In this document: positions 1 through 27,466 of the stretch, piece by piece
Numbering within the stretch: the stretch's first letter is position 1
Layout of the letters: every line of letters begins with the position of its first letter
Source: Rebecca billardiae RCC1528
Taxonomy: Eukaryota > Protista > Haptophyta
Reading direction: 5' to 3'
Assembly: GCA_965240325.2 (NCBI GenBank)
Contig: OZ251227.1
Coordinates: 2,790,001-2,854,000, forward strand
DNA: 64,000 bases
Made by a program: the position numbers and the translations under genes
The notes under the pieces: generated by a model
What the model saw: only the letters and a program-made list of their open reading frames with translations
What the model was told of the DNA's origin: nothing
The model's database searches: none

Positions 1-77
1 GCTCGCACCTCAGCAGCACTGGCAGCAACCTGGCTGTTCGTGTCTGGCCTCGTCGTGCGTGCACCCCCCACGCGGCG

Positions 78-944
78 TCAGATGGATGCCAGCGACCACG
101 TCGTCATCTTTCTCGTCGGCACCTGCATGGCCATCTCCGCATAGTCCTCGTGCGTGATGTGGTAGAAGCTCGGGGGCGCGTCCGCGGGTGGGGTGATGCC
201 CTTGGCGCGCAGCTCGGCATTCGCGCGCTTCTGCGCGCGCTGCTCCTCGATGTGCCGAGCCTCGCGCTCCACGAGCGTCTCACGCCCCTGCGATAGCTCC
301 GCCGTGCGCACCCGCCGCCTCGCCCGCTCAACCTCGAGCTGCGTAAGCTGCTCGCGCTCCTTTTGCGTGAGCGCTTCAGTCGAGCTGTGCCATGGCGTCT
401 TGGCGCCGAGCCGCGGGTGCACGTACTCCTCGCCTTGCCTCTGGTACGGCGGGCGGATCAGGTTTGGGTGCGAGCGGTGGTTATCGCTGAGGAAGTCGCG
501 CTGCGAGACCTGGAACTTGTTCGCGCGCGGGACGAACGACTCGGTCGAGCGCGTGTCCAGCCACTCAGCGCGGTAATTGTAGTCAGCACGTTTGACCGAA
601 TCGTACGCAAGGAGCTGCCGCTGCATCGGCCTGTCGGGGAAGCGATGGCCGAGATAGGTCGTTGGGTTCCACCCAGGGCGCTGCAGCCCGAGGATATCCA
701 TCTTCTTCGCCTCGATCACCTCCCGGCGCGCGGCTCGCGCGGCCGGAGGGACGGCATTCACGTTGAAGGCCTTGACCGTCGGCGAGAAATTTACGCTAGT
801 TCGTCGGCCTCGAGAGTTCTCTGCGGGGGATTGGCGCGGTGCAGCACGCACAGGCGCACGGCAGGACGGCGTGAGCGCGGAGGCATCACTGCCACTCTGT
901 CGCCGCGCCGCGCGGCGAGGGTGCAAGCGCTCACCGAACGACAT
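78..944 (-). CDS. Hypothetical protein (~250 aa); probable exons 944-935 and 820-78, with a 114-nt in-frame intron at 934-821
   Basis: ATG at 944. The GTGAGC donor at 934 and the ...CCCCGCAG acceptor at 821 splice in frame to give MSFENSRGRRTSVNF.... The removed segment is low-complexity and GC-rich, and the remainder has host-like codon usage and a charged coiled-coil-like C-terminus. No family recognised. Confidence 0.65.
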   Translation of the reverse strand: MSFGERLHPRRAARRQSGSDASALTPSCRAPVRAAPRQSPAENSRGRRTSVNFSPTVKAFNVNAVPPAARAARREVIEAKKMDILGLQRPGWNPTTYLGHRFPDRPMQRQLLAYDSVKRADYNYRAEWLDTRSTESFVPRANKFQVSQRDFLSDNHRSHPNLIRPPYQRQGEEYVHPRLGAKTPWHSSTEALTQKEREQLTQLEVERARRRVRTAELSQGRETLVEREARHIEEQRAQKRANAELRAKGITPPADAPPSFYHITHEDYAEMAMQVPTRKMTTWSLASI

Positions 945-1082
945 GGCAAGATCGAGGCTGCGAAGAAAACCGACGATCTTGACGTTTTCTCGGCATCCGG
1001 ACTGCACATGCACCGGACTCTCAACTCAGCGGCAGGGCGGCCCTGACCGAGGAAGCCGCGAGCATCACGACGCGCTCCGCTG

Positions 1083-1679
1083 ATGCTCGCCGCGTGTCGT
1101 CGGCCGGCGTGGGCGCGTTTCGTGCCGCTCGCACGGCGCGCGCAGTTCGCGTCGACCGTGGCGGACGACTACTTTGCGCTGCTGGGCTGCGAGCGCCGCT
1201 TCGACCTCGACCCGGAGGCGCTTCACCACACGTACAAGCAGCTGGTGGTGGAAGCGCATCCAGACAAGCTCGCCGGCCAGCCGGAAGAGGAGCGGCTCGC
1301 TGCGCAGAGGCACGCCTCCGAGCTCACGCACGCGTTCAGCGTCCTGAAGAATCCGGCCGCGCGCGCGAAGCACATGCTCGAGCTGTACGGCGCGCCGCTC
1401 ACAGAGGAGACCGGCCCTGGGGCGGTCGACGGCTTGTTCCTGATGCGCGTGATGGAGATGCGTGAAGCGATTGAGGACGCGAAGTCGCGAGCGCAGCTGG
1501 AGCAAATGCGTGCAGAGAACAGCATGGAAATGGCCTCGATAGGAAACGACCTAGCGCGAGCGTTCGTCGACAACGATCTCGACAATGCCAGGCGGTTGGT
1601 TGCGGCGCTGCAGTATGTGCAGAGGATCGACAAAGAGATTGAAGAGCGACTGCACAATGGCCACGGGCTGTCAGAATGA
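1083..1679 (+). CDS. HSCB: Fe-S cluster co-chaperone HscB/Hsc20 (Jac1-like), probably mitochondrial
   Basis: Arg-rich N-terminal presequence and a J-domain (DYFALLG...F.LD...HPDK...AFSVLKNP..RAKHML). The HscB C-terminal domain follows (FLMRVMEMREAIE...LQYVQRI). Confidence 0.9.
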   Translation: MLAACRRPAWARFVPLARRAQFASTVADDYFALLGCERRFDLDPEALHHTYKQLVVEAHPDKLAGQPEEERLAAQRHASELTHAFSVLKNPAARAKHMLELYGAPLTEETGPGAVDGLFLMRVMEMREAIEDAKSRAQLEQMRAENSMEMASIGNDLARAFVDNDLDNARRLVAALQYVQRIDKEIEERLHNGHGLSE

Positions 1680-2114
1680 CAAATATCGATGCTAGCGTCG
1701 GACTACGATGGTGAGGATAGCTACTTTCGTCTGACTCAGATCAGGATCGGTTTTGTATCAGGCGGGCGTTCCCCGCGCTGGACCTGGTCATGAATACGCC
1801 AATTCGGCGGAACCGCCGCGCCCTCGCGTTCCTATTATTGAAATTGGCTTCCTCTATTTCAAGCGGGCGGTATACATTTGATTACGGCCCGCGCCAGTCC
1901 GGTAGCAATGCCCCCCCAGGGGGGGGGGCATTGCTTTCGGGAGCGTGTGGCAGGATCCCGGGAACGCCCTTGACGCAGCGCTGTGATATGCACCTGTACA
2001 GTTTCAATGGCGTCAGTCCCGTCCGCGACGCCGTCACTCGGGCAAGCATCAGCATAGCATATATATGATGATATATGTGTGTATATATATATACACACAT
2101 ATACACACATATAT

Positions 2115-2619: not shown

Positions 2620-3313
2620 TGAGCTCATGGGAGCTTCGCGGCGGACAACGTGGGAACACACCGCGCGGACGCGCGCGGTTTCACCCGAACTCGAAGGTCG
2701 ACATCCGCGAGGATTTGACCAACAACAACACCATCGTACCGGCGATGCGGGACGCACAGCGCCAATCGCACCGCACCGAATACTCTCGATCTCCCCAGCT
2801 GTCGCAAGGCAAGTGGACGCGTACCCCGATCCACTGGCAGCGCTCATTCGAGAACCTCGACTCCCGCTTCGGATTCCCAGCGGATCGAGCAAGATCCCAA
2901 CCGAGTCAACGGCCGCTACGGTGACGACGCCGAGCGCCGAGGACCAAGGGACGTGCGCCGCAAGCGGCGCCACCACATCGAAGTACCTGAAGGCGAGTCG
3001 CGACGCCCGGAGCACTTCGGGTCACACATCACCGCGCCCCCGCAGCGGGACCCGTCCCAGCCGCTCCAGCAGCTGGACCACAACAACCAAGCCAAGCAGC
3101 GCGCGGTCGACCGAGACGCGCCGATCGAGCAGAGCGCCGCCGCGCCGCGCGCCGCGCCAACTTACTCCATGACGACCCCCAGCGCGCAGACGCAACAGGG
3201 AGGATCGCTGGAGTTCGAGCCGTCCCCATATCCCCAGCAGCGCCGCGGAGCGCGGGGATGGAGCGGGCCCTCCAAGCCCATGGCGGAATGTTGGGCGTCG
3301 CCAGGGCAGTCGC

Positions 3314-4285
3314 CACCGGAAAGGGCTGCTGGCGGCTGTTTCCCGGGAACAAACTTGGTCCGCCAGCAGCCCTCCCGCCCCGCCCTATCAATACTGCTTG
3401 CACCCGCCGCTGGCGGCGCTCGTGGCGAGGCCCGCTGGCAGCCCCTCTCGCGCCAGGCGACAAATACGCCGCCCGCCCGTAGCTGGCGCTTGCAGAAAGG
3501 CCGCCAGCGGCCCTCCCGCCCCGTCAAATCAATATGCTTGCACCCGCCGCTGGCGGCGCTCGTGGAGTCGTGCGGCAAGGCCCGCTGGCAGCCCCTCTCG
3601 AGCCCGGCGACAAATACGCCGCCCACCCGTAGCTGGCGCTTGCAGAAAGGCCGCCAGCGGCCCTCCCGCCCCGTCAAATCAATATGCTTGCACCCGCCGC
3701 TGGCGGCGCTCGTGGAGTCGTGCGGCAAGGCCCGCTGGCAGCCCCTCTCGAGCCCGGCGACAAATACGCCGCCCCGGCCCGTAGCTGGCGCTTGCAGAAA
3801 GGCCGCCAGCGGCCCTCCCGCCCCGTCAAATCAATATGCTTGCACCCGCCGCTGGCGGCGCTCGTGGCGAGGCCCGCTGGCAGCCCCTCTCGCGCCCGGC
3901 GACAAATACGCCGTCGCCCGTAGCTGGCGCTTGCAGAAAGGCCGCCAGCGGCCCTCCCGCCCCGTCAAATCAATATGCTTGCACCCGCCGCTGGCGGCGC
4001 TCGTAGCAAGGCCCGCTGGCAGCCCCTCTCGCGCCTGGCGACAAATACGCCGCCCGCCCGTAGCTGGCCGCTTGCAGAACGGCCGCCAGCGGCCCTCCCG
4101 CCCCGTCAAATCAATATGCTTGCACCCGCCGCTGGCGGCGCTCGTGGAGTCGTGGCAAGGCCCGCTGGCAGCCCCTCTCGCGCCTGGCGACGAGGGCATA
4201 CGCCGTCGGCTCGTCGCCCGTAGCTGGCGCTTGCAGAAGGGCCGGCAGCAGTGCTCAAGCAGCCCTCCCGCCCCGCCAAATCATC
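3314..4285 (+). repeat. Tandem array A, left arm (~6 units of 139-152 bp)
   Basis: Marker TCAATA(T/CT)GCTTGCACCCGCCGCTGGCGGCG at 3388, 3529, 3679, 3831, 3970 and 4111. Confidence 0.95.
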
Positions 4286-4849
4286 AGCTTGGCAGCGCGC
4301 GCGCCCGCGCGAGCCCGCGCCGCGCGAGGCCGCCCCCGAGGGCGAGGCCGGCACGGTGGCACGCGCGCGCGCGCGCGCGGACGTGTTCGGAGCTCGCCCA
4401 GTCGCACTGATTCCCCCTGGGCTGCCTCAGCGGCCGGGGCCGCGGTGGGTGGTGCGGCGGATGACGCGGTGGACGGCGCGGCCAGCGGGCGCACGGCGTG
4501 GGCCGGCGGGCGCGGCGGCGGCCCCCACCTCTGCTGCGGCGCCGCCGCACACGCCGGCGGCGCGCTCCCACGAGTGGACGCTCTGTCTGGCTCCCGTCTC
4601 TCCGCGCCGCGCGAGCCCGCGCCGCCTGCGCCCGCCGCGCGCCTTAGCGGCGGGGCCGGCGGCGGCGTGGACGAGGTAGCTGTGCAGGCGGCGGCAGTGT
4701 CGGCAGCAGCGGCGGCGCGCCCCACGGGACGAGCATGCCCTTGACCCTCAAGCCGGTGCACGCGCCACCCGCGCACGGTCGCACTCAGCGGCACCGTGCC
4801 CCGCCCGCCGCGGTGGCTGACTCGACGTGAAACGGGGGACGGCGTAGTT

Positions 4850-5370
4850 GGCGTCGGCGTATTGGTTGCCCGGCGCAAGCGAGTCTGCCTGCTGCGGGCC
4901 TCGCCACAAGGCTCACACGTGCCGCCACGGCGGCGGGTGCAAACAGTATTGACGTGTTGGGGCGGGAGGGCGCTGCTGGCAGCCCTTCGACCTGCAAGCG
5001 CCATCACCTGCTAGCTAGGCCTGGGGGCGACGGCGTATTGTCGCCAGGCGCGAGCGGGGCTGCCAGCGGGCCTCGCCACGAGCGCCGCCAGCGGCGGGTG
5101 CAAGCAGTCTTGATAGGGCGGGGCGGGAGGGCTGCCGGCGGACCAAGTTTGTTCCCGGGAAACAGCCGCCAGCAGGCGTTTGCGCGTACTATTAGCATAA
5201 GCTACAGCAGTAGCAGCAGTTATTAGTCTCAGTCGCGCGGGGAGGGCGTCTGCGGGCCCCGCCACTAACGCCGCCAGCGGCGCTTGGTTCAAGCAGTATC
5301 GAATAAGTACACTAGGGGGCGCCGGAGGGCTGCTGGCGGCCCAAGTTTGTTCCCGGGAAACAGCCGCCAC
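4850..5370 (-). repeat. Three degenerate inverted copies of the array A unit
   Basis: CCAAGTTTGTTCCCGGGAAACAGCCGCC near 5143 and 5342 is the reverse complement of ~3330-3358. GGCGGGTGCAA-like motifs occur near 4933 and 5093. Confidence 0.85.
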
Positions 5371-5989
5371 CAAGCCTTCGACCTGGTGGAGCTGGTGTCG
5401 GCTTTAACACGTACATGGCGGACGGGGTCCGCAGGCCGCAGGGTCAAGGATAGAGTCTCTGCTGGGGCCTTGAACATTACCATGGAGGAGAGCATAGGGC
5501 CAAGACTGGTTGCTGGCCCCCGTGCCCAACTATGGCGTGCCCAACGCGGTGACGTCCGTACAGAACTACTCACCCGACACGGGCTCGCTGCTGCCACATC
5601 ATGTGTCGCCATCACGCGCGCCTGCGACGCATCACGTCTGCTGCTTCGATGAGCATCAGGTCTGCAACAGACCAAGGAGGAGCAGCTCACGCGACAGCGC
5701 TTTTGCTAGCTGACCAGGGCTATGACGGGTGTGTTGACGTCGTTGTCTCGGCATGTGTCTGCATCAGGCGGGCTTGCAGCATGCCACGACATCCCGCGGC
5801 GGCGAGTCCCCGACGAATAAACAGGGGCGCGAATAAGTACGACTCGTCCGGTTGGCCTACGTGAATCGTGATGTGCTGCTAGCACTCGTGAGCTATCAGA
5901 GCATGCGCTTGGTGCAAAGCGTGCATGCAATGCTGCTTGCCGCCACCCAGCACACGTGCCACCTAAGGTGCGCGAGCAGGCCCAGCCAC

Positions 5990-7070
5990 GCGACGGCAAT
6001 CGTCAAGGCCGACAAGGCGGTGCGGCGCGGGCGGCGCCGGGCGCGCTGCTCTGGTTGCCGACGATGAGCGGAGCAGCAGCGCAGCAGCCGCTGCTGCGCC
6101 GTGCGTGATCAGTGCATGGAACTAGCGCTAAGTAGGCGCGCATGCCGGCTCGCTGCTTGCCTGCACACGGGCCGCCTGAGCTGCGCGAGCACGGGCCGCA
6201 GCGACGCAGCCGCTCAGCGGCAATCATCACGGCGGCGCGGCGCGGCGCCGGGCGCGCTGCTCTGGTTGCCGACGATGAGCGGAGCAGCAGCGCAGCTGCT
6301 GGTTCTGCGCCGTGCGCAATCGGCGGATGAGCTACGCGTCAAGTGAGCGCGCATGCCGGCTCGCTGCTTGCCTGCACACGGGCCGCCTGAGCTGTGCGAG
6401 CACGGGCCGCAGCGACGCAGCCGCTCAGCGGCAATCATCACGGCAGCGCGGCGCGGCGCCGGGCGCGCTGCTCTGGTTGCCGACGATGAGCGGAGCAGCA
6501 GCGCAGCAGCTGGTTCTGCGCCGTGCGCGATCGGCGGATGAGCTACGCGCCAAGTGAGCGCGCAAGCCGGCTCGCTGCTAGCCTGCGCACGGGCCGCAGC
6601 TGTGTGAGCACGGGCCGCAGCGTCGCAGCCGCTCGGCGGCAACATCACGGCGGCGCGGCGCGGCGCCGGGCGCGCTGCTCCGGTTGCCGACGATGAGCGG
6701 AGCAGCAGCGCAGCAGCCGCTGCTGCGCCGTGCGTGATCGGTGCATGGAACTAGCGCTAAGTAGGCGCGCATGCCGGCTCGCTGCTTGCCTGCGTACGGG
6801 CCGCCTGAGCTGCGCGAGCACGGGCCGCAGCGACGCAGCCGCGCGGCGGCAACATCACGGCGGCGCGGCGCGGCGCCGGGCGTGCTGCTCCGGTTGCCGA
6901 CAATGAGCGGAGCAGCAGCGCAGCAGCCGCTGCTGCGCCATGCGTGATCGGTGCATGAAGCTAGCGCTAAGTAGGCGTGCATGCCGGCTCGCTGCTTGCC
7001 TGCGCACGGGCCGCCTGAGCTGCGCGAGCACTGGCCGCAGCATCGCAGCTGCGCACTGGCAATCGTCAAG
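5990..7070 (-). repeat. Tandem array B, left arm (~5 units of ~210 bp), inverted relative to the right arm
   Basis: Marker GCA(T/A)GCCGGCTCGCTGC near 6140, 6351, 6562, 6769 and 6979. Confidence 0.95.
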
Positions 7071-7859
7071 TACTCAATCGAGGCGGGTGCACAGCTGGTT
7101 GCTCACGATGAGCAGAGCAGCCGCGCAGCTGCTGCCGCAATGGGTATCCTCGTTTGTTACCAGCTCAACAGAGTGGGCGACTCCTACTTGATGCCACTGC
7201 GCCTTTCCTGAACACTGGCTCTACTTGACAATCAACATCTCAATACATATGACCGGAGCAGTGATCAGATGACTACATGTGTCGTCGAGCAACCAAGAGC
7301 AGAGACAGCCTACAGACGGTACCTTCGTAAGCCACCTGGTCAAAGTAAGCCGCAGCGCAAATGCGTATAGGCTACGTCCTGATTGCTGCTGTCGAGCAAG
7401 AAGACGACGCGGTCGATGCGCCACGTAGTCGAGTCTGCAACTGCCCAGAGGCAACGACGCGTCCGACTACCAGGTGGTTGTAGTACTCCGCGGTAGTCTG
7501 CCAAGTGGTCTTGACCGATCAGCGAATGGGCCGTTGTCGTACGCGTTCCTCCGTGCGTAGAGCACCGAGCGCGCACGGGAATGTACTGCCTTAGAGCATA
7601 ACGGCTTGAGATGCATCAGCGCAGCTGCCAGCTGCTGCTACTTGCTTGGCTGATGATGACGATTGTCAGCAGCAATATCAGCTGCTGTGAGCCCTGGCCA
7701 GCATTCGCGTCACCCACGCGCGGCTGCGCCTGGCGGCACACTCTGCACATGGCACGTATATGCTCGACGGCAGCAAGCTAAGGCGCGCGGCTAACTCGGC
7801 GCTCGTTCCATGCCTCGATCGCATACCATACAAGGCCAGCAGATTCATCGTCTACTATC

Positions 7860-10850
7860 ATCGGTGCACCCAGCGCCGCGCCGCGCCGCCTTGACGATTG
7901 CCGCAGCGTGGGTGTGCTGCTGCTGCACCTGCTCGCGCAGCTCAGGCGGCCCGTGCGCAGGCAGGCAGCGAGCCGGCATGCGTGCTCACACGGCGCGAAG
8001 CCCAACCTCCGATCACGCATGGCGGAGCACCAGCAGCTGCGCTGCTGCTCCGCTCATCGTCGGCAACCGGAGCAGCGCGCCCGGCGCCGCGCCACGCCGC
8101 CTTGACGATTGCCGCTGAGCGGCTGCGTCGCTGCGGCCCGTGCTCGCACAGCTCAGGCGGCCCGTGTGCAGGCAAGCAGCGAGCCGGCATGCGCGCCTAC
8201 TTAGCGCTAGTTCCATGCACTGATCACGCACGGCGCAGCAGCGGCTGCTGCGCTGCTGCTCCGCTCATCGTCGGCAACCGGAGCAGCGCGCCCGGCGCCG
8301 CGCCGCGCCGCCGTGATGATTGCCGCCGCGCGGCTGCGACGCTGCGGCCCGTGCTCGCACAGCTCAGGCGGCCCGTGCGCAGGCAAGCAGCGAGCCGGCA
8401 TGCGTGCTCACTTGGCGCGTAGCCCATCCGCCGTGCGCGCACGGAACAACACCGGAAGCTGCGCTGCTGCTCCGCTCATCGTCGGTAACCGGAGCAGCGC
8501 GCCTGGCGCCGCGCCGCGCCGCCTTGACGATTGCCGCCGTGCGACTACGTCGCTGCGGCCCGTGCTCGCACAGCTCAGACGGCCCGTGCGCAGGCAAGCA
8601 GCGAGCCGGCATGCGTGCTCACTCGGCGCGTAGCCCATCCACCGATCGCGCACGGCGCAGCACCAGCAGCTGCGCTGCTGCTCCGCTCATCGTCGGTAAC
8701 CAGAGCAGCGCGCCGGGCGCCGCGCCGCGCCGCCGTGATGTTGCCGCCGCGCGGCTGCGTCGCTGCGGCCCGTGCTCGCACAGCTCAGACAGCCCGTGCG
8801 CAGGCAGGCAGCGAGCCGGCATGCGCGCCTACTTAGCGCTAGTTCCATGCACCGATCACGCACGGCGCAGCACCAGCAGCTGCGCTGCTGCTCCGCTCAT
8901 CGTCGGCAACCGGAGCAGCGCGCCCGGCGCCGCGCCGCGCCGCCGTGATGTTGCCGCCGCGCGGCTGCGTCGCTGCGGCCCGTGCTCGCACAGCTCAGGC
9001 GGCCCGTGCGCAGGCAAGCAGCGAGCCGGCATGCGCGCTCACTTGGCGCGTAGCCCATCCGCCGTGCGCGCACGGAACAACACCAGCAGCTGCGCTGCTG
9101 CTCCGCTCATCGTCGGTAACCAGAGCAGCGCGCCGGGCGCCGCGCCGCGCCGCCGTGATGTTGCCGCCGCGCGGCTGCGTCGCTGCGGCCCGTGCTCGCA
9201 CAGCTCAGACGGCCCGTGCGCAGGCAAGCAGCGAGCCGGCATGCGCGCCTACTTAGCGCTAGTTCCATGCACCGATCACGCACGGCGCAGCACCAGCAGC
9301 TGCGCTGCTGCTCCGTTCATCGTCGGCAACCGGAGCAGCGCGCCCGGCGCCGCGCCGCGCCGCCGTGATGTTGCCGCCGCGCGGCTGCGTCGCTGCGGCC
9401 CGTGCTCGCACAGCTCAGACGGCCCGTGCGCAGGCAGGCAGCGAGCCGGCATGCGCGCCTACTTAGCGCTAGTTCCATGCACCGATCACGCACGGCGCAG
9501 CACCAGCAGCTGCGCTGCTGCTCCGCTCATCGTCGGCAACCGGAGCAGCGCACCCGGCGCCGCGCTGCGCCGCCGTGATGTTGCCGCCGCGCGGCTGCGT
9601 CGCTGCGGCCCGTGCTCGCACAGCTCAGACGGCCCGTGCGCAGGCAAGCAGCGAGCCGGCATGCGCGCTCACTTGGCGCGTAGCTCATCCGCCGTGCGCG
9701 CACGGAACAACACCAGCAGCTGCGCTGCTGCTCCGCTCATCGTCGGTAACCAGAGCAGCGCGCCGGGCGCCGCGCCGCGCCGCCGTGATGTTGCCGCCGC
9801 GCGGCTGCGTCGCTGCGGCCCGTGCTCGCACAGCTCAGACGGCCCGTGCGCAGGCAGGCAGCGAGCCGGCATGCGCGCCTACTTAGCGCTAGTTCCATGC
9901 ACCGATCACGCATGGCGCAGCACCAGCAGCTGCGCTGCTGCTCCGTTCATCGTCGGCAACCGGAGCAGCGCGCCCGGCGCCGCGCCGCGCCGCCTTGACG
10001 ATTGCCGCCGCGCGGCTGCGACGCTGCGGCCCGTGCTCGCACAGCTCAGGCGGCCCGTGCGCAGGCAAGCAGCGAGCCGGCATGCGCGCCTACTTAGCGC
10101 TAGTTCCATGCACCGATCACGCACGGCGCAGCACCAGCAGCTGCGCTGCTGCTCCGTTCATCGTCGGCAACCGGAGCAGCGCGCCCGGCGCCGCGCCGCG
10201 CCGCCTTGACGATTGCCGCCGCGCGGCTGCGACGCTGCGGCCCGTGCTCGCACAGCTCAGACGGCCCGTGCGCAGGCAAGCAGCGAGCCGGCATGCGCGC
10301 TCACTCGGCGCGTAGCCCATCCGCCGTGCGCGCACGGAACAACACCAGAAGCTGCGCTGCTGCTCCGCTCATCGTCGGTAACCGGCGCAGCGCGCCCGGC
10401 GCCGCGCCGCGCCGCCTTGACGATTGCCGCCGTGCGGCTACGTCGCTGCGGCCCGTGCTCGCACAGCTCAGGCGGCCCGTGCGCAGGCAAGCAGCGAGCC
10501 GGCATGCGTGCTCACTCGGCGCGCAGCTCATTCGCCGATCGCGCACGGTGCAGCAGCAGCTGCTGCGCTGCTGCTCCGCTCATCGTCGGCAACCAGAGCA
10601 GCGCGCCGCGCGCCGCCTTCTTGGCGGCGGCTGCGACGCTGCGGCCCATGCTCGCACAGCTCAGGCGGCCCGTGCGCAGGCAAGCAGCGAGCCGGCATGC
10701 GTGCTCACTTGGCGCGCAGCTCATCCGCCGATCGCGCACGGCGCAGCACCAGCAGCTGTGCTGCTGCTCCGCTCATTGTCGGCAGCCAGAGCAGCGCGCC
10801 CGGCGCCGCGCTACGCCGCCTTGATGTTTCCGCCGCGCGGCTGGGCGTGC
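7860..10850 (+). repeat. Tandem array B, right arm (~14 units of 210-211 bp)
   Basis: Marker GAGCCGGCATG recurs every 210-211 bp from ~7970 to ~10496, with a shorter last unit at ~10689. Confidence 0.95.
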
Positions 10851-11429
10851 TCGCACACCATAGGCGGCACGTGTGCTGGGTGGCGGAAAGCAGCAGTGCG
10901 TACACGCTTTGCATTAAGCGCATGCTCTGATTGCGCACTCACGATTCACGTAGGCCGCGTTGTCCTTGTTCGAGCCCCTGCTCATTCGTTCAGGACTCGC
11001 CGCGCGATGTCGTCGCATGCTGCAAGCCCGCCGGATGCAGACAAACACTGTGACAACGCGACGACGAGGACACGCCTGTCGTACTTTAACCTTGGCGAGC
11101 TCTCACAAGTGCCACTGTCGCGTGGGCATGCTGCCTCTTGACGTCGGCTGTCACGAGCAGGCCGATATTGTACACAGAGAAGACGTACAAGGCCACTGTC
11201 GCGCGGCAGCATACGTACAGTATATCTTCGTCTTTCGAGGCTGATGTGTCGTCGATCGAGGCATGACGGGATAAGGCGGCACGATGTGGTAGCAGCAAAC
11301 GCCCATGGCCAAGTGCCTACAGTAAACTTATAAGTTGGACGTGAAGGTCAGCACCCTACCTTGCGCATGTGCATGCTGTCGTCCATGCCCGTCCTGGTGG
11401 CTGCTCACAGCGTCTGCTGGCCTCGCCAC

Positions 11430-12132
11430 CAGCGTCCAGCGCCGGCGGCGGCGGGTGCAAGCATATTGATTTGACGGGCGGGCGGAAGGGCTGCTGGCGG
11501 CCCTTCTGCAAGCGCCAGCTGCGGGCCGACGGCGTATTTGTCGCCGGGCTCGAGAGGGGCTGCCAGCGGGCCTTGCCGCACGACTCCACGAGCGCCGCCA
11601 GCGGCGGGTGCAAGCATATTGATTTGACGGGGCGGGAGGGCCGCTGGCGGCCTTTCTGAATTCTGCAAGCGCCAGCTACGGGCGGGCGGCGTATTAGTGT
11701 CGCCAGGCGCGAGAGGGGCTGCCAGCGGGCCTCGCCACGAGCGCCGCCAGCGGCGGGTGCAAGCATATTGATTTGACGGGGCGGGAGGGCCGCTGGCGGC
11801 CTTTCTGCAAGCGCCAGCTACGCGGGCGGGCGGCGTATGTGTCGCCGGGCTCGAGCGAGAGGGGCTGCCAGCGGGCCTCGCCACGAGCGCCGCCAGCGGC
11901 GGGTGCAAGCATATTGATTTGACGGGGCGGGAGGGCCGCTGGCGGCCCTTCTGCAAGCGCCAGCTACGGGCGGGCGGCGTATTTGTCGCCAGGCGCGAGA
12001 GGGGCTGCCAGCGGGCCTTGCTACGAGCGCCGCCAGCGGCGGGTGCAAGCAGTATTGATAGGGCGGGGCGGGAGGGCTGCTGGCGGACCAAGTTTGTTCC
12101 CGGGAAGCAGCCGCCAGCAGCCCTTTCTGGTG
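11430..12132 (-). repeat. Tandem array A, right arm (~5 units), inverted
   Basis: GCATATTGATTTGAC at 11461, 11614, 11763 and 11909, and GCAGTATTGATA at 12049. The terminus CCCTTTCTGGTG mirrors CACCGGAAAGGG at 3314. Confidence 0.95.
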
Positions 12133-12237
12133 TAGACCCTTCTGGCGTCGCCCACGTTCCAGCCGAGCTGCGACAACCTGTCGTCGTCCACGCTCTCACC
12201 GACACCGACCGACGGCGATTTTGGGACGTCTTCCACG

Positions 12238-15200
12238 ATGGCGGCGCGACCCGGACTCACCAGTCGCGACGACCAGCCGACAAGCATTGTCGCAGCACCG
12301 GGGCCATCGCCGCCGGTGGGCGCGACGCCCCACCTCTCCATCAGCAGCCTCGTCCCAGACTTCCAGGAGCTGCTCAAGGACTACCCCTTCGACACGGGGC
12401 AGATCCCCCACGATCCCGGACAGCGGATGCAGCCAGTCGAGGCGATCGCACCGGAGCTCGAGTACCTCGGCGACTCGCCGGGCGATCTGGTGAGCATCGA
12501 TGAGGTCGTCGCCGCGCTCTACGAGGTGGCCCTCATGGGCATCAACGAGCCCGACCAGAAGCCGATGGACGTCGTGGAGAGCTTCTTCCACGACATGGGA
12601 GGTACGCGCAGCGCTCCGACTAACCACTCCCACACCATCCTGTGCTGCAGCAAGGCAGCATGGGAACAAGATGCCCGCGATCGGCATCGCATGTCCTCAT
12701 TGTTGTCCACTTACCCCCTCCTGTCTGCCAGCAGCTGGTACGGTGTGAGCGAGACCTTCGACTGCATCATCCCAGAGATCCCGTCGCGCAAGAACCTGGG
12801 CAACGGCATCTACAGCAGCCAGTGGAGTGAGATTGACACCGATGATCCAGAGTCGTGCCAGCCATGCGACAATCAGTCGTGCACATCGAGGCATTGCCTT
12901 CTTGAGTGCAACATCTGTGGGATGGGCAGAGTCTGCAGCTACCGATGCGCAGACGCCATCCAGGTTCAGCATCAGCTCGAATGTGAGCAGATCATCCAGT
13001 TTGCAGCGATGAACGATGGGATTGACATCGATGATGATGGCATTCACGTCCACCAACAGGACGGACCCGTCGCAGCGGCTGATCGCCGCAGCCTGAGCGT
13101 CGTGAATGACGCAGGCGCCAGCCTCGATGATATTTGCCCTTGGCGGCCATCTAAACGATGCACTATCTACTCGGGAGGCTTCATCGCAGCAGCCGCAGAG
13201 CGGCATCAAGGTCACAACTACACAGTTGGAGACTATGTGCGGGAAAGGGACGAGCTTCACCAAAGCAAGTTTGATCTCATGTTCCATTGTAACGACGCAC
13301 TCCTACAGCCAGGTGTCGCATGCTTACTGCACGACGAGTTCTATGGGCTGACTTCTGAAGCAGGCGAGGGACACTCGCCAGCTGACGACGGTCCACCTGG
13401 ACATGGCACAAACTACCCGCCTGCCGCGACTGGCGCCGACAACAGCGCACAGCAGAGCAGCGATGGGGACGAGTCCTCTACGTCGGACATTGACAGCTAT
13501 ACCACAGCAGAGGACCACATTGAGACAAGCTCGCCCCACGCGTCACCGCGAACGCGCAGAAATGGAAGCGAAGCTTGCACCTACTTGCCCGACGCACATG
13601 CAATGATGGCTGTGCAGACAAGCCAGCCCGGCGTCGGAAGCTACAAGCTGAATTTCTTCACAATCAAATCGAAAATGGCTATCCACGGAGCGATCAAGGA
13701 CGCAGTCACCGAGGTCAAGGCTTCCTACAAGGGAAGAGCGACCGACACTACGTCGTCCATGGTCACCCTCGTCGAGGCCAGGCTCTCCGGATACGCGCTG
13801 GCCGAGGCAGCCGTGTGGACAGCCGAAAATGCTATTCGGGAACCTTACGCAACCGCATTCGCAAACATGGACGCGGACACCACCATCATGCAGATGACGA
13901 TCGTCTACGAGCGATCGGTGGAAGTACTTTTCAAGCGTATCAAGGACATGATGCTGCCAAGTCTCTTTTCGTACCTCGAGTCGAAACGGCACATCGTGAA
14001 CCCGAATGAGAATTTCCTGAATTTACATACTCTGCTCGAAATATTCGAGCACGAGCTGAACGTATCGACCATGTCGGAGCTCCGAGCTGAGTTCAAGAAG
14101 CTCTACCCGGACCGACCGACCCCGGTGAGCGGCCCCGAGATGATCAAGCAAACAGTGGAGATGGTACGCGCATCACGCTATCGAGAGCTAGATGACGCCA
14201 CACTCCTCGTTTTCAAGTTGTACAACGGGATGCACGAGCACCCAGAGGTCTACTCGACCGTCATCTCTATTTACGGTTCAATGTCGCCCCAGCAATGCGT
14301 GGCGCAGACCGAACAGCTCACCGCCCAGATCGAGGACGCATACAGGCGTTGGACTCAGTCGCCCAAGGGACGACAGGCAGCGCAACGTGACCCCAAGCGG
14401 GGCGGTCCCGCGCACGCTCTCAATACTGAGGAGGCGGACCGCCGACAACCAGCCGTCACGTGCTCGCACTGCGGGCTACGCAATCACACCGCAGAGCGGT
14501 GCTGGAAGCTACATCCAGACTTGCGGCCACCCAGGCCGCCCGGTGCACCAAGACAGGGCAACTTCAAGCCGCCCGCCAAGCCCGGCGGGCGTGACGGCAA
14601 GTTCATCAAAGTACCTCCGCCCCCCAAGCGGGCGGGGAGGCCGCGAGCCCAGATGGTGCAAGACGAGGACATCGACCCGGAACCCGATGACGCAGATCTC
14701 GAGCCGACGCAATACGCGTATCTGGACTCGGGCGCGTCCCAATCATTTGTCGATATCAACCTCGGCCTGCTACACAATGCTCATCCGATCAGCATGTCTG
14801 TTAAGGTCGCCAAGCGCGACATTGAGCTACACGCATCCAAGGCAGGCGACATGTACGTATACTTACTCGACGCCGACTCAGACACAACCGTGCCGGTGTG
14901 CCTGGAAAACGTCGTCGGAGTCGAAGATCTCGATACTACTCTCTTTTCAGTCAACGCGTTCGCCGCGGCCGGAATGGCTGTGGTGTTCGACGAACGACCA
15001 TACATCCGCATCGGCCCCAAGAGGGTTCATTTGCGCCCCGACAACACTGTCGGATTCAAGGCAGTCGTACCCAAGGCAGAGACAGCCATGCCGGCCACCG
15101 CAGACGACATGCCACCAGACGTCGACCCGATCAAGAACGGGCGAAAGATCACGCTCTGGCAATCCAGACTAGGATACGCCGATATCAAGCGTGTACGCGC

Positions 15201-18165
15201 AACCTACCGCGCGAACGACAAGATGTCGGAGGCATCGCCCTGCACGTACCAGCCCTCCGACGTTGCCAAGTTCAAAGCTAAGCCGTTCCCGGGCACACGT
15301 GAGAGGACAACTCGACCGCTCGAGATGCTCCACAACGATGTCATCGGGCCCATCAACGGGCTGCCCGCCAAGACTCCAAGGTGGGGAACTCTATTCATCG
15401 ATGATTTTTCCGGATACATGCGCTTCTACGACATGCAAAACAAGGCTGAAGCGCCGGAGAAGCTCGACCTCATGGCCAGCGAGATGGGAGCCAACTCTCT
15501 ATCCGCCACCATGCAGAACAAGGGCATCGCCGGATGCACCATTCACCTCGACGGAGGCCGAGAGTTACACTCAAAGAATTGGAACCGAGTCCTTCGCAGG
15601 TACGACATGCTATGCAACTACATGTCGCCCCCCCACACGCAGCAGCTGAACGGCGTCGCCGAACGTGGCCTCGGAGTCATCATGAATGACGCCAGGACAA
15701 TGCTGTACCTCTCAGGCGTACACCACAAATGGTGGCATTGGGCAGCCAAGTGCGCTGCCGCGCAACGCAACCTGATGAGCAAGCATCCTACCAGCGATGG
15801 CAAGCTGGTTTCACCGCACGAGTTGATGTTTGGCACCTCGCCCGGGCCATTCCTACAAAAGCTGAGAGTCTGGGGCTCGCCCTGCATCTACCTCGTACAG
15901 TCGATCAACAAGCAGAACAAGCTACTCCCGCGCGCGCGGGAGGGCATCTTATTGGGATACGGATTCGACGGTATCTTCGAGCGAGGCGCCATCAAGCGAT
16001 CGCACGGATACATCGTTTTGAGTGCCGACGACGGGAAAATCGTCATCACTCGGCATGTCAAGTTCAACGAGCAAGTCATTTTGGATCGAATCTCTACGCA
16101 TTTCAAGGAGATACGCGAAATTCGGGACCCCCTGCTGGCGTGGAGCGCTCGGCGACCCCCTCAAGGTGCAGATGCTGGTAAGACCCATGACAGCAACACC
16201 AACGAGGAGGGCGGCGAAGAGTTTGCCAGCAGCAGCAGCGACGCCGACAGCGGCTCCGAGCGCGGAGGAGACGATCCACCATCGCCGGACGAGAAATCAG
16301 ACGACGATGACGACGAGGATGACGGGGACGGCCCCGACGACGACGAGAAGGGAGATGACGGCGACGACGACGGTGATGAAGACGGCCCCGGAGCTGGAGG
16401 CGGACCATCGCCCAGCAACGCGCCGCCGCAGCCGAAGCAGCCTCCTCCCTCCGCCGATCGTCGCCCACAGCGGACCCGCAACATGACTGGCAAGTCATAC
16501 TTCCCGTCGACGCGGCGCGCGCGCGCGCGCGCGCAGCTCGCGCAGCTCGCATCAGATATCCCGGTACCTACATCGTTCAAGGAAGCGATGGAGAGCAAGC
16601 AAGCATCCGATTGGACAAGGGCTATCATGGAAGAATACGAGGCCCACGACAGACTGGGCACATTCACGCCCGTCGTTGTTCCCAAAGGGAAAGCAATTAT
16701 CCCATCGAAGCTGGTCTTCAAGGTCAAAGCCAATCCAGATGGTACCATCGAACGGTACAAGGCAAGATTGGTTGGTCAAGGCTTCCGCCAGATTCAAGGA
16801 GTCAATTACGACGAGGTATTCTCGCCTACTATCCGGTACGAGAATGTACGCCTCCTATTGGCACTGACGACGGAGCTACGAACACCAGAAAGACCTTGGA
16901 TCATCCACTCCGCGGACGTGAGTACGGCGTACCTCCAAGCCCCTTTGGAGGACGGCCTGAAGATCTACACTACGCTACCCCCGCTGTACCCGTGTACTCT
17001 CAAGCCACCCGAGGGGCATGTGGTCGCGGCCGACTGGGATATGGCCCTTCCAGGATTTAAGCAGAGCGGCCGACGATGGCACCTCCGCCTCAGCCAGAAA
17101 CTGCGAGAGAAAGGATTCAAGAAACTCGCACAGTCGGAGTGCATCTTCGTTCGCATCTCCGGAGACATCATCGACGTCATCGCAGTGTACGTGGACGATC
17201 TGCTTATTCTGAGCAGCTCCCCCGACAGCGCAAGGCCCAGCTCGATTATTGAGGAAATTCGAAAAGAATTTACCCTCCGGGATTTGGGACCAGCAACGAC
17301 GTTCCTGGGCATGAATATCACCCAGGGGCCCAAGTCGACGACTATCTCCATGTCACAGTACATCACCGATCTCCTCAAGAGGCACGACATGAGCGACATT
17401 ACGCCCGTCGACAACCCATGCAGATCGGCAGCAGAGCAACCGACATCAATCGAGACAGACGATTCATCATCGTGCTCGTCGGAGGAATCAAAGACCTACC
17501 GAGCAATCGTCGGAGCGCTACTATTCATCATGAACACCTGCCGACCCGACATCAGCTATGCAGTCAACATGTTGGCAAGGTACATGGCAAGCCCAAGTTC
17601 GAACGACCTTAAAGGTGCCAAGCGAGTGCTCAGGTACTTGGCCGGGACAAAGAATTCCGGCATCACTTTCAAATCAACACCTACTCAGCCACGGACGGAG
17701 ATGTTTGTGGACTCAGATTGGGCCAACGATACAAAGGATCGCCGCTCGACAGGAAGCTATATCTACTTCCACGCAGGCGGCCCAGTATCGTGGCGCACCT
17801 TCAAGCAGTCAATCACAACCCTCTCATCATGTGAGGCCGAATATGTCGCTCTCGCGGAAGGAGCCAAAGAGGCAGTTTACCTACGCGACATCATCAGCGA
17901 TATTCTCAATATTCCCAAGACGCCCATTGTGATCCACGAGGACAACAAGGGGGCGATTGATCTCTCGAAGAACAGCATTCATCATAAGCGCACCAAGCAC
18001 ATCGACGTACGACACCATTTTATTCGAGATTGTGTCGACCTCGGTGCAGTCAACATTATCAAGGTACACACATCGGAAAACATCGCCGATTGTCTTACCA
18101 AGGCGCTACCCAAGGACAAGTTTGCAAAATTCCGAGACATCATGGTTGCACCAGTTTCGAATTGA
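12238..18165 (+). CDS. Copia gag-pol polyprotein (1975 aa) with an N-terminal extension containing a MYND-like zinc finger
   Basis: Zinc knuckle CSHCGLRNHTAERC (14461) and protease YLDSGAS. Integrase HND...LDGGRE...NGVAER, RT YKARLV/KQSGR/YVDD, and RNase H FVDSDWA/EAEY/KHID/ADCLTK. The stop codon abuts the PPT. Confidence 0.97.
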   Translation: MAARPGLTSRDDQPTSIVAAPGPSPPVGATPHLSISSLVPDFQELLKDYPFDTGQIPHDPGQRMQPVEAIAPELEYLGDSPGDLVSIDEVVAALYEVALMGINEPDQKPMDVVESFFHDMGGTRSAPTNHSHTILCCSKAAWEQDARDRHRMSSLLSTYPLLSASSWYGVSETFDCIIPEIPSRKNLGNGIYSSQWSEIDTDDPESCQPCDNQSCTSRHCLLECNICGMGRVCSYRCADAIQVQHQLECEQIIQFAAMNDGIDIDDDGIHVHQQDGPVAAADRRSLSVVNDAGASLDDICPWRPSKRCTIYSGGFIAAAAERHQGHNYTVGDYVRERDELHQSKFDLMFHCNDALLQPGVACLLHDEFYGLTSEAGEGHSPADDGPPGHGTNYPPAATGADNSAQQSSDGDESSTSDIDSYTTAEDHIETSSPHASPRTRRNGSEACTYLPDAHAMMAVQTSQPGVGSYKLNFFTIKSKMAIHGAIKDAVTEVKASYKGRATDTTSSMVTLVEARLSGYALAEAAVWTAENAIREPYATAFANMDADTTIMQMTIVYERSVEVLFKRIKDMMLPSLFSYLESKRHIVNPNENFLNLHTLLEIFEHELNVSTMSELRAEFKKLYPDRPTPVSGPEMIKQTVEMVRASRYRELDDATLLVFKLYNGMHEHPEVYSTVISIYGSMSPQQCVAQTEQLTAQIEDAYRRWTQSPKGRQAAQRDPKRGGPAHALNTEEADRRQPAVTCSHCGLRNHTAERCWKLHPDLRPPRPPGAPRQGNFKPPAKPGGRDGKFIKVPPPPKRAGRPRAQMVQDEDIDPEPDDADLEPTQYAYLDSGASQSFVDINLGLLHNAHPISMSVKVAKRDIELHASKAGDMYVYLLDADSDTTVPVCLENVVGVEDLDTTLFSVNAFAAAGMAVVFDERPYIRIGPKRVHLRPDNTVGFKAVVPKAETAMPATADDMPPDVDPIKNGRKITLWQSRLGYADIKRVRATYRANDKMSEASPCTYQPSDVAKFKAKPFPGTRERTTRPLEMLHNDVIGPINGLPAKTPRWGTLFIDDFSGYMRFYDMQNKAEAPEKLDLMASEMGANSLSATMQNKGIAGCTIHLDGGRELHSKNWNRVLRRYDMLCNYMSPPHTQQLNGVAERGLGVIMNDARTMLYLSGVHHKWWHWAAKCAAAQRNLMSKHPTSDGKLVSPHELMFGTSPGPFLQKLRVWGSPCIYLVQSINKQNKLLPRAREGILLGYGFDGIFERGAIKRSHGYIVLSADDGKIVITRHVKFNEQVILDRISTHFKEIREIRDPLLAWSARRPPQGADAGKTHDSNTNEEGGEEFASSSSDADSGSERGGDDPPSPDEKSDDDDDEDDGDGPDDDEKGDDGDDDGDEDGPGAGGGPSPSNAPPQPKQPPPSADRRPQRTRNMTGKSYFPSTRRARARAQLAQLASDIPVPTSFKEAMESKQASDWTRAIMEEYEAHDRLGTFTPVVVPKGKAIIPSKLVFKVKANPDGTIERYKARLVGQGFRQIQGVNYDEVFSPTIRYENVRLLLALTTELRTPERPWIIHSADVSTAYLQAPLEDGLKIYTTLPPLYPCTLKPPEGHVVAADWDMALPGFKQSGRRWHLRLSQKLREKGFKKLAQSECIFVRISGDIIDVIAVYVDDLLILSSSPDSARPSSIIEEIRKEFTLRDLGPATTFLGMNITQGPKSTTISMSQYITDLLKRHDMSDITPVDNPCRSAAEQPTSIETDDSSSCSSEESKTYRAIVGALLFIMNTCRPDISYAVNMLARYMASPSSNDLKGAKRVLRYLAGTKNSGITFKSTPTQPRTEMFVDSDWANDTKDRRSTGSYIYFHAGGPVSWRTFKQSITTLSSCEAEYVALAEGAKEAVYLRDIISDILNIPKTPIVIHEDNKGAIDLSKNSIHHKRTKHIDVRHHFIRDCVDLGAVNIIKVHTSENIADCLTKALPKDKFAKFRDIMVAPVSN

Positions 18166-18172
18166 GGGGGCG
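18163..18172 (+). other. Polypurine tract of the copia element
   Basis: TGAGGGGGCG lies immediately 5' of the 3' LTR, as is typical of copia elements. Confidence 0.85.
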
Positions 18173-18677
18173 TGTCAAAAGCCCAAGGCAGCCATTGGCG
18201 CCATTCCCCAGCTCGAGGTTTCAATCTCAAGGCGCTGAGCAATTCTAAGCGCCACCATGCTGAGGCTTCATTCCAATTCAAAACCTTATCATCGACCTCA
18301 ACTGTCGGTTTTATTCACGTCCAGTGCACCAATTCATTCATCATCATTCATCGTGCATTTCATAATGGCCAACAAGCGTCGCGGAACAATCCAGGACTAT
18401 CAAAGCTCCTGAGATGTTCTCAAGCCTTCGCAGGGCAATGCACTATCAGATCATTCCGAGAACGTGCCTTCGCAATCAGAAGCCGAGAAGCATCTCCAAA
18501 CTTTCTAATCACGAACGTTCTGAGATGAGTCCTTTTTGAGAACCCTACAAAAGTTTTTCTCAGCGATCTGGAGCTACACCAGCCACACAACAAAACCGAA
18601 CTGATCAGCAAGCAGGGAGACCCCTGCGCCACCATCGCCAAAGAGCGAACCTCCGCCAGCGCACGAAGTGCCAATCA
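18173..18677 (+). repeat. 3' LTR (505 bp)
   Basis: Near-identical direct repeat of 2115-2619 with TG...CA ends, followed by the TSD TATAT. Confidence 0.97.
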
Positions 18678-19105
18678 TATATATATCATGGCCCGCGGTG
18701 CAGGGCGGAGCGCGCAGCGTGGAGCCCGCACTGCGGGCCCGAACCACGTTATTTCAAAAAGATCTACTTTGATATATATATATATATATATTGATATCAC
18801 TAACTACTGTTATACGAAGTGCTCGTGGCCCAGTTGTAACTACAGTGACTACAGTCTAGCTGAGTAGTAGGTAGCAGTGACGAAGTTCACTGCGGCGGAC
18901 CGCATAGATGGCATCAGCACTGCTTTAGCATGCAGCAGCATTATATCACTAGTATGTTTTAGACTCTGCTAGCTTATTCAGTGAGAGTGACTGACGTCGC
19001 GCCGCGGTTGACTCGTGCCGACGCGGCACGCGCGCGCGCAGCCACCGTTACGCCATTCCTCGCGTCACGTCATGACGTCATGACGTGACGTGACGCCATG
19101 ACGCG

Positions 19106-22100: not shown

Positions 22101-22364
22101 GCCCGCGCGGCGCATCTTGCGGAACATCTGCTTGCGCTTGCGCACGCGCTCCGGGGCGACGCCCGCGCGGCGCGCGACGATCGCCACCGAGTAGGCCACC
22201 TCGCCGTTCATGAAGAGCGGCACGTCAGGGACGTCGAGGTTCGGGTCGCGCGCCGGGCTCGCCGGCGTGCGCGCGAGCGGCCGCGAGTCGCGACGGCCGG
22301 CGAGCGCGCGCGCGCTGCGGCGCCACCGCTTGAGGTAGGCCAGCAGCGACGGCAGCGTCATCAT
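19106..22364 (-). CDS. Anoctamin/TMEM16-family channel or scramblase; introns at 20202-20069, 20004-19854 and 19480-19282, and probably 22326-22258
   Basis: Motifs FSSLQRQRL, YFGDQIALYFEFL, ITEWELHRT.TEFEDSLIVKTFAFQCVNSY..LIYIAF, EMVVQFG|YITLFAIAFP, NNT|VERKTDAWK and IGNW. The GT-AG introns restore a continuous frame to the stop at 19106, and the Ca2+-site acidic residues appear to be retained. The start codon and first intron are less certain. Confidence 0.92.
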
Positions 22365-27000: not shown

Positions 27001-27466
27001 AGCACTCCTGACCACTGGCTCCACCATGAGGCTCTGCAGCTGGTTGAGTCTGCCCCTGGACATGCCAACCACCTCGCAGAAGTAGAATAATATCGACGTG
27101 ACATCCCACACAGTGAGCAGCTTTTTGGTCTCGGTACAGCAGTCAGCTGCCTGCACCCGCGCGGCGGCTTTGGCCACTCTGGCCTTGAGACTGGCGAACA
27201 TCCTGTCCGTTGCCAGGTGAATGTTGGTCACCACCCCTGCATACGTGAAGTATTCGCCATCCTGCAACGTGTCTATGAGGGCAGCTTGTTTTTAAATTCC
27301 CCTTTATAACGGGCTCCGGGTGATCAGACTGGCGGCCGAAGCCTCCAGCCCTTTGTCCAGTTGCCCTGTTGATGACCTGTATTGGGTCCACCTGTGCGTG
27401 CCCAGGGGGCACATACACTGCCACCTTGGATTTGGGGTAGTTGGGCTCCATATCATAGTACCACAT
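24055..27466 (-). pseudogene. LINE ORF2 remnant (RT end, RNase H, CCHC, low-complexity tail), frameshifted by a 67-bp insertion
   Basis: ORFs 27143-27466 and 24055-27267 join in frame (…INRATGQ-AALIDTLQDGEY…) when 27290-27356 is removed. The RT catalytic core is absent because of the 5' truncation. Confidence 0.85.
27290..27352 (-). repeat. 63-bp exact copy of the LINE 3' terminus (23722-23784) with a 4-bp TTGT duplication
   Basis: The sequence is identical at both sites. TTGT flanks it at 27286-27289 and 27353-27356. Confidence 0.92.

Follow-up and report, generated by a model that had tools for sequence, protein, structure and literature searches.

How does a palindrome of almost nine kilobases come to lie between the 5′ long terminal repeat (LTR) and the coding region of a young retrotransposon, and to which of the two does it owe its presence there, the retrotransposon or a mobile element of another kind? 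The question is raised by a stretch of 64,000 nucleotides from the haptophyte Rebecca billardiae RCC1528 (assembly GCA_965240325.2, contig OZ251227.1, positions 2,790,001 to 2,854,000), which we refer to as the window and number from its first letter. It contains a 16.56-kb Ty1/copia element, young and structurally complete, that carries, between its 5′ LTR and its open reading frame (ORF), two families of tandem repeats, A and B, arranged in mirror image. The stretch from LTR to ATG is 9.6 kb long, and the palindrome (3303–12143, 8841 nt) makes up 8.84 kb of it. We read the palindrome as a non-autonomous Foldback-type DNA transposon, possibly composite, nested in the 5′ leader of the copia element, an interpretation in which we have moderate confidence. 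On the DNA sequence, a nested transposon appears to be the best-supported explanation, given the tiered inverted arms, the non-coding middle, a candidate 9-nt duplication at the edges and a composition foreign to copia.

The earlier note on this DNA described a nested mirror order of two satellite families in a retrotransposon leader, and Tandem Repeats Finder, inverted pairs and self-BLAST return the arrays, their orientation and their order as it claimed. From left to right the block consists of an A array on the plus strand, arm-specific DNA, a flank, a B array on the minus strand, a 727-nt centre, a B array on the plus strand, a flank and an A array on the minus strand. The left arm (3303–7138) opens with a short terminal domain (3303–3359, plus strand), a terminal-type unit with a 10-nt stem whose loop contains a characteristic 19-mer, and passes into the A array (3360–4283, plus strand) of six units of 139–159 nt and a partial one, each unit with an internal 11-bp dyad. 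Then follow a left-arm-specific segment (4284–5690) made up of an 80% G+C stretch (4284–4849), two degenerate inverted A-like blocks and unique DNA, the left flank of the inner palindrome (5691–6021, plus strand), and the B array (6022–7138, minus strand), whose five ~210-nt units, accompanied by a partial one, belong from outside to inside to the subtypes alpha, beta, beta, alpha and alpha. The middle domain, or loop (7139–7865), has 56% G+C, is unique in the window and has no family match. On its far side, the right arm (7866–12143) begins with a B array of 14 units (7866–10879, plus strand), enlarged by a three-unit (630-nt) higher-order repeat, and continues with the right flank (10880–11120, minus strand), which mirrors the left one, a right-arm-specific unique segment (11121–11415), an A array of four units and a partial one (11416–12086, minus strand) and a second terminal domain (12087–12143, minus strand), again a terminal-type unit.

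For this segmentation of the arrays, we used real units from the window as references rather than the consensus lines of Tandem Repeats Finder. The program itself places the A arrays, with a unit of ~150 nt, at 3360–4191 and 11586–12086, and the B arrays, with a unit of ~210 nt in 5 and 14 copies, at 6022–7068 and 7869–10843. The outer arms form an inverted pair at 95% identity (3292–3565 versus 11881–12154), and there are many inverted B–B pairs at 86–97%. Self-BLAST yields two colinear mirror alignments, 3292–4001 against 12154–11438 (89%) and 5741–7134 against 11058–9714 (85%). The mirror relation of the flanks, previously placed at 5735–6000 and 10830–11065, is confirmed at ~83% identity with indels and fades outward to about 5690 and 11120. 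A central loop is present as had been proposed, at 727 nt rather than the ~0.8 kb first given, and the DNA of the left arm that had been called unique is so in part, the remainder being the two A-like blocks (4855–5184 and 5235–5378), which are 68–81% identical to A. Within the 64-kb window, the centre has no similarity elsewhere, and no A- or B-like DNA lies outside 3292–12154. The two kinds of array are seen at one locus only, and the label satellite is therefore provisional.

The ends of the A blocks share a common module. Both degenerate A-like blocks terminate in the terminal-type unit that is found at the two outer ends of the palindrome, and the 19-mer of this unit occurs exactly four times in the window, where zero occurrences are expected, and each marks the outer end of an A block. 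This is the placement expected of a transposon-end module. Within the palindrome, no ORF of at least 100 amino acids reaches a Pfam gathering score; a zf-HC2 match in a B-array ORF stays below threshold, at 19.8 bits against a cut-off of 22.2. The block thus has the long terminal inverted repeats (TIRs), largely of tandem subrepeats, that define Foldback elements, in the form of the mirror-oriented A (~150 nt) and B (~210 nt) arrays, as well as their non-coding middle domain. As a separate observation, the dyad in every A unit (for example, within 3501–3650) surrounds a loop of ~35 nt, and its 8-mer halves occur 27 times in the palindrome, with zero occurrences in the B part, versus 11 times in the remaining 55 kb.

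The element that carries the palindrome displays the hallmarks of Ty1/copia. Its LTRs (2115–2619 and 18173–18677, both plus strand) are 505 bp long, begin with TG and end with CA, and are 99.8% identical by self-BLAST, which aligns them as direct repeats at 2115–2620 and 18173–18678; they differ at 1 of 505 positions. The element is bounded by a 5-bp target-site duplication (TSD), TATAT, with its left copy at 2110–2114, in an AT-rich microsatellite, and its right copy at 18678–18682, and a purine tract (18163–18172) lies just ahead of the 3′ LTR. The polyprotein ORF (12238–18165, plus strand) encodes 1975 amino acids free of stops and frameshifts. It contains a zinc knuckle and a protease motif, both identified by reading the translation, and an integrase SH3-like domain that precedes the reverse transcriptase (RT) domain RVT_2 (E 5e-49) and an RNase H, in the copia order gag–protease–integrase–RT–RNase H. 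The palindrome divides the leader into a left part (2620–3293, plus strand), which holds a 181-codon open frame (2627–3172) with no protein family match, and a right part of 85 nt (12153–12237, plus strand) directly ahead of the polyprotein ATG, whose reading frame stays open upstream as far as 12136. In a word-index protein search with the whole polyprotein, the nearest relatives were distant copia polyproteins, at most 37% identical over the RT part, and a word-index search with the first 420 amino acids gave no match.

Several other features of this element deserve mention. At 1975 amino acids, its polyprotein is unusually long for copia. The first ~470 residues (12238–13650), ahead of the gag-like part, include a Cys/His-rich cluster and have no relative in Pfam, the PDB or the word search. 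Between the integrase and RT parts lies an acidic, low-complexity tract rich in Asp, Glu and Gly (16288–16390), with 27/54-nt tandem repeats. The insertion site is an AT-rich TA/CA microsatellite (2060–2114 and 18678–18690), ~430 nt downstream of an HscB-like gene, and is the sole low-GC spot nearby, with 45% G+C in 2001–2500.

Comparison of the two arms bears directly on the age of the palindrome. The arms are 5–15% diverged, with ~1 in 10 positions differing, against 1 in 505 in the LTRs, and the palindrome is thus far older than this copia integration and did not arise in place. Two subtypes of B unit, alpha and beta, are each present on both arms, and the colinear mirror alignment keeps the subtype order beta, beta, alpha, alpha over four units. 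Among the A units, the outermost of each arm are reciprocal best matches (97%), and the order is scrambled further in. Two rare unit variants do occur on both arms, as the earlier note had reported, yet the cross-arm homogenisation that they were taken to suggest is not needed: the mean identity of B units is the same within arms (89.1% in the left, 89.1% in the right) as between them (88.3%), the subtypes are shared, and the youngest units (98–99%), those of the three-unit 630-nt repeat, are confined to the right arm. The distribution of the variants can be explained by common descent together with the three-unit higher-order expansion in the right arm. Overall, the pattern of units would fit an array that was already heterogeneous when it underwent a single inverted duplication and that later expanded and rearranged locally.

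A second line of evidence comes from strand composition. On the sense strand, the copia element proper has an excess of A over T, with a skew of +0.14 in the LTR, +0.32 in the left leader and +0.15 to +0.20 in the ORF. The four non-repeated parts of the palindrome, with values of −0.04, +0.10, +0.03 and −0.02, are indistinguishable in this respect from host DNA, for which two stretches gave −0.02 and +0.01. The step in skew coincides with the left edge of the palindrome, and a break in strand composition at this point argues that the DNA inside is foreign to copia.

Do the edges themselves carry the mark of an insertion? No TSD had been visible in the earlier reading. Scanning candidate boundaries for direct repeats, we located an exact 9-nt repeat, GGCGTCGCC, at mirror positions directly outside the strong inverted repeat, with its left copy at 3294–3302 and its right copy at 12144–12152, both on the plus strand. 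The accompanying argument that the block is unlike a fresh Foldback insertion leaned on the absence of a TSD and loses its footing now that there is a 9-nt candidate. Simulations with the local base composition produced a mirror-placed direct repeat of 9 nt or longer in 0.3% of trials if the flanks were unrelated, and in 1.6–4.6% if they were treated as an inverted repeat diverged by 25–10%. On the two strands of the window together, the 9-mer is present seven times. Nor does the symmetry fade gradually at the outer edges, as had been suggested. From inside to outside, the match between the ends goes from 100% to 7/13 (~54%), rises to 12/13 (92%) in the stretch that holds the 9-mer and then drops to about chance, a bump that speaks for a duplicated target with dyad symmetry rather than for a smooth fade. 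We regard the 9-nt direct repeat as a candidate TSD rather than a proven one. A 9-nt repeat that borders the inner (B) palindrome was rejected as a TSD; it does not lie at the end of the inverted repeat and is within the chance expectation of a wide scan. No third copy of the 9-mer was found beside the internal degenerate ends.

The position of the palindrome would have consequences for any transcript that spans it. Predicted folding supports the earlier view that the sense transcript could form long duplexes: the contiguous stretch 6760–8250 is predicted to fold into a nearly continuous stem of ~370 bp (−968 kcal/mol), and between the arms there are 242 perfect inverted matches of 21 nt or more, up to a maximum of 131 nt, together covering 46% of the left arm. 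A sense transcript would have 100 AUGs before the polyprotein start, of which 6 fall in the left leader and 94 in the palindrome. Given scanning translation and RNA silencing, many upstream AUGs and long duplexes are expected to handicap expression. For this copia copy, the block looks like a burden rather than an adaptation. The roles that had been offered for it, as a device for ribosome shunting or packaging, a small-RNA source or decoy, or a satellite nursery, find no support, and the composition break argues that the DNA is foreign to copia in the first place.

If the block is a nested Foldback-like element, it would have TIRs of 3.8 and 4.3 kb in three tiers, namely a short terminal domain, the outer ~150-nt A units with their dyads, and the inner flank with the ~210-nt B units, and its arms would be held apart by the non-coding middle of 727 nt. 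A transposase encoded elsewhere would recognise the repeated dyad motifs and the terminal hairpins; provided that the 9-nt duplication is real, this enzyme would be Mutator/Foldback-like. The element would have inserted through a staggered cut of 9 bp at a site 85 nt ahead of the polyprotein ATG, and unequal exchange or slippage may later have altered the arrays, producing the three-unit expansion of the right arm and the rearranged left arm. The insertion would have lengthened the leader from ~0.76 kb to 9.6 kb and brought with it 94 upstream AUGs and a multi-kilobase hairpin, with the probable result that translation of the polyprotein is hindered and that the transcripts become a substrate for RNA silencing. 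In this scheme we infer the family of the transposase, the mobility of the element, its timing (before or after this copy integrated) and its effect on expression.

Several observations weigh against a nested transposon. The LTRs are 99.8% identical, and an insertion after integration must therefore be very recent; otherwise the block came by way of a parent copy and reverse transcription, which blurs the line to an inherited leader. The 9-mer is nearly its own reverse complement and may alternatively belong to the inverted repeat, as part of a final 13 nt with a single mismatch. Unlike those of many TIR elements, the outermost 13–14 nt of the two ends match at just 7 of 13 positions. Neither a second palindrome, nor another copy of an A or B unit, nor an 'empty' copia leader was found in the window, by protein look-ups or in a metagenome scan, which leaves the mobility of the block putative, and no transposase domain turned up in the large ORFs that were scanned across the window.

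The palindrome may instead be an integral, inherited part of the leader of this copia lineage, copied through the RNA genome in each cycle. It may then have originated by an old transposition or capture, or by inverted duplication of tandem repeats in the leader, and a role in shunting, packaging or small-RNA production would be optional. The carrier looks fully competent: its LTRs are almost identical, it has a 5-bp TSD of its own and a purine tract, and its 1975-aa polyprotein is uninterrupted. The simplest timing is accordingly that the block was already present when this copy integrated. Changes in the arrays such as the three-unit expansion could stem from template switching. Long repeats are, on the other hand, unstable in reverse transcription. 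The unique parts of the palindrome lack the strand skew of copia, growth in place would leave the candidate 9-nt duplication unexplained, and such a lineage would have to live with 100 AUGs and multi-kilobase duplexes ahead of its polyprotein start. Tandem arrays inside LTR retrotransposons are well known, for instance in the 3′ untranslated regions (UTRs) of Ogre/Tat elements, but the known ones are direct rather than mirror-image pairs (PMC7004042). Palindromes in the LTRs of Sirevirus elements, which are also copia, are documented as targets of small interfering RNAs (PMC4728375). No relative with such a leader was found, though no close relative was found at all. On balance, we consider an integral origin unlikely, if not strongly so. 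We likewise think it unlikely that the block is at present a stable component of an active copia lineage, with an RNA of 16.6 kb and a duplex-forming leader of 9.6 kb from which the polyprotein is still translated, for example, because the hairpin is bypassed or removed.

Alternatively, the block could be foreign DNA acquired without a transposase, a host inverted-repeat (hairpin-RNA) locus captured into the copia leader by template switching in the course of reverse transcription or by recombination or repair. The host-like composition of its unique parts, the fuzzy edges at which the outermost nucleotides match poorly, and the lack of coding capacity would all follow, but capture predicts neither a 9-nt direct repeat exactly at both edges nor the arrangement of terminal-type units as end modules, and no source locus was found within the 64-kb window. 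We find this account quite improbable. Palindromes of such size are also a known failure mode of long-read assembly, and the structure could in principle be a fold-back chimera or, if real, an inverted duplication that arose at the locus after the copia element had integrated. Here we agree with the earlier note that the unequal and diverged arms argue against an artefact: the arms differ in their numbers of B units (5 versus 14) and A units (6.5 versus 4.5), are 5–15% diverged, and each has a private segment (4284–5690 and 11121–11415), which makes an assembly fold-back very unlikely. A duplication in place would have to postdate the LTRs, with their single difference in 505 positions, whereas roughly every tenth position differs between the arms. 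Taken together, an artefact or a local duplication has very little probability. An array of the type found in Ogre/Tat UTRs was also considered and rejected, as the arrays here are inverted pairs and their strand composition differs from that of the element.

The search for relatives extended beyond the window. Exact look-ups of the polyprotein and of six open frames from the leader and the arrays were empty. A full HMMER pass with the A-array open frame against 1.84 billion representatives gave a single match, to a 1663-aa Phytophthora sojae model, which we rejected as chance low-complexity similarity; its locus has no DNA similarity to the window. The metagenome scan, made with the 19-mer of the terminal-type unit, returned seven loci, all of them bare ~20-nt matches in unrelated contigs of 42–57% G+C, and these were rejected as well. 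A rough estimate puts the chance expectation at about this number. Scans of the window with Rfam and for tRNAs were both empty.

The surroundings of the element are those of a eukaryotic genome with 65–75% G+C. They include the HscB-like co-chaperone gene (1083–1679), an anoctamin-like ORF and a giant LRR/FG-GAP ORF. The HscB product was found on three short Logan contigs only (ERR14847148-50), which match window positions 1–1854 at 99.9%; these contigs end before the microsatellite and the copia element and are uninformative about the latter. No open frame of copia or the palindrome is on record from the same runs (ERR14847148-50). The anoctamin-like ORF (19078–22478) had no match in the word-index protein search. 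Its Pfam match ends at position 338 of the 460-position profile, and the ORF is followed by an overlapping one in a different frame, an arrangement suggestive of an intron or a shift of frame within the gene.

The window holds several other repeats and open frames. A degenerate array of ~7.3 kb (50582–57957), with a period of 12 nt and higher periods of 63, 75 and 363 nt, lies within a 2821-codon open frame (49816–58281); read on the plus strand, it is rich in Pro and Ser and in this respect resembles hydroxyproline-rich wall proteins. At 28995–29419, in the LRR/FG-GAP ORF, there is a smaller array of this type. On the minus strand, a 1550-codon open frame (39044–43696) has no family match, and motif positions within it recur every 1287 nt in at least three copies, a period that exceeds the limit of the tandem-repeat tool. 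A 1069-aa open frame (24055–27267, minus strand) gives an RNase H match of 25.2 bits against a Pfam cut-off of 25.8 and could be either what is left of another retroelement or a host gene.

If the palindrome is indeed a nested Foldback-like element, the event behind it would be an ordinary one, the insertion of one mobile element into another, in an unusual form. The class itself is known; what would be out of the ordinary are the arms of ~4 kb, their construction from two unrelated repeat families, their occurrence in a GC-rich eukaryote and their position in the leader of a retroelement. The block would be a useful marker for genome annotation and another example of Foldback arms able to seed tandem arrays. 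If it is instead an inherited component of the copia lineage, a retrotransposon would carry a Foldback-like module and spread two tandem-repeat families with it. A block that travels with copia would link the Foldback-type and the retroelement-borne routes to satellite DNA, and would lead one to ask how a retroelement with a multi-kilobase hairpin in its leader fares in reverse transcription, in translation and in the face of RNA silencing.

Two known groups of LTR retrotransposons offer partial parallels. Ogre/Tat elements also carry arrays with units of 100–200 nt outside their coding region, a possible seed of satellites, and an origin through aberrant strand transfers has been proposed for these 3′ UTR arrays (PMC7004042). 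Unlike the arrays described here, which form mirror pairs upstream of gag and have a foreign composition, the Ogre/Tat arrays are direct, lie downstream of pol, are common to many copies of the element and have the same history as the element itself. Sirevirus elements are copia-type elements with hairpin-forming sequence that may draw RNA silencing (PMC4728375), though their palindromes are short motifs in the LTRs and not an 8.8-kb block in the leader.

The closer parallels are with Foldback-like transposons, and 9 bp is the usual TSD size of Foldback/Mutator-like elements (PMC3169594, PMC4079207). In Tetris of Drosophila virilis, TIRs with ~220-bp tandem repeats flank a non-coding middle, and the TSDs are 8–10 bp (PMC4079207), which compares with units of 150 and 210 nt and a 9-nt candidate duplication in the present case. 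Like FB and Tetris of Drosophila, the haptophyte palindrome has arms tiered into a flanking, an outer tandem-repeat and an inner domain, a non-coding middle and unequal copy numbers in the two arms. Tetris differs in that its arms reach up to 1.7 kb and are built of one repeat family, whereas those described here measure 3.8–4.3 kb, combine two unrelated families, are seen as a single copy and have no sequence similarity to it. The Mutator/Foldback element Tm1 of root-knot nematodes has 9-bp TSDs, TIRs that are on average ~93% identical within an element, and asymmetric outermost motifs (PMC3169594). Its TIRs are likewise composites of tandem repeats and variable in length, and its asymmetric ends parallel the poorly matching outer 13 nt observed here; the repeats of Tm1 are shorter, however, at 13–15 bp, its elements measure 1–2.6 kb, and autonomous copies bearing a transposase are known. 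A third comparison is with Galileo of Drosophila, in which the TSD is 7 bp. Galileo, a member of the P superfamily, shares with the palindrome its long, internally repetitive, Foldback-like TIRs (PMC3573991, PMC3688188). It uses a P-type transposase with a THAP domain, and nothing here points to the P superfamily. The repeats of Galileo hold extra binding sites for its transposase, and they provide a model for the role that the dyads of the A units may play.

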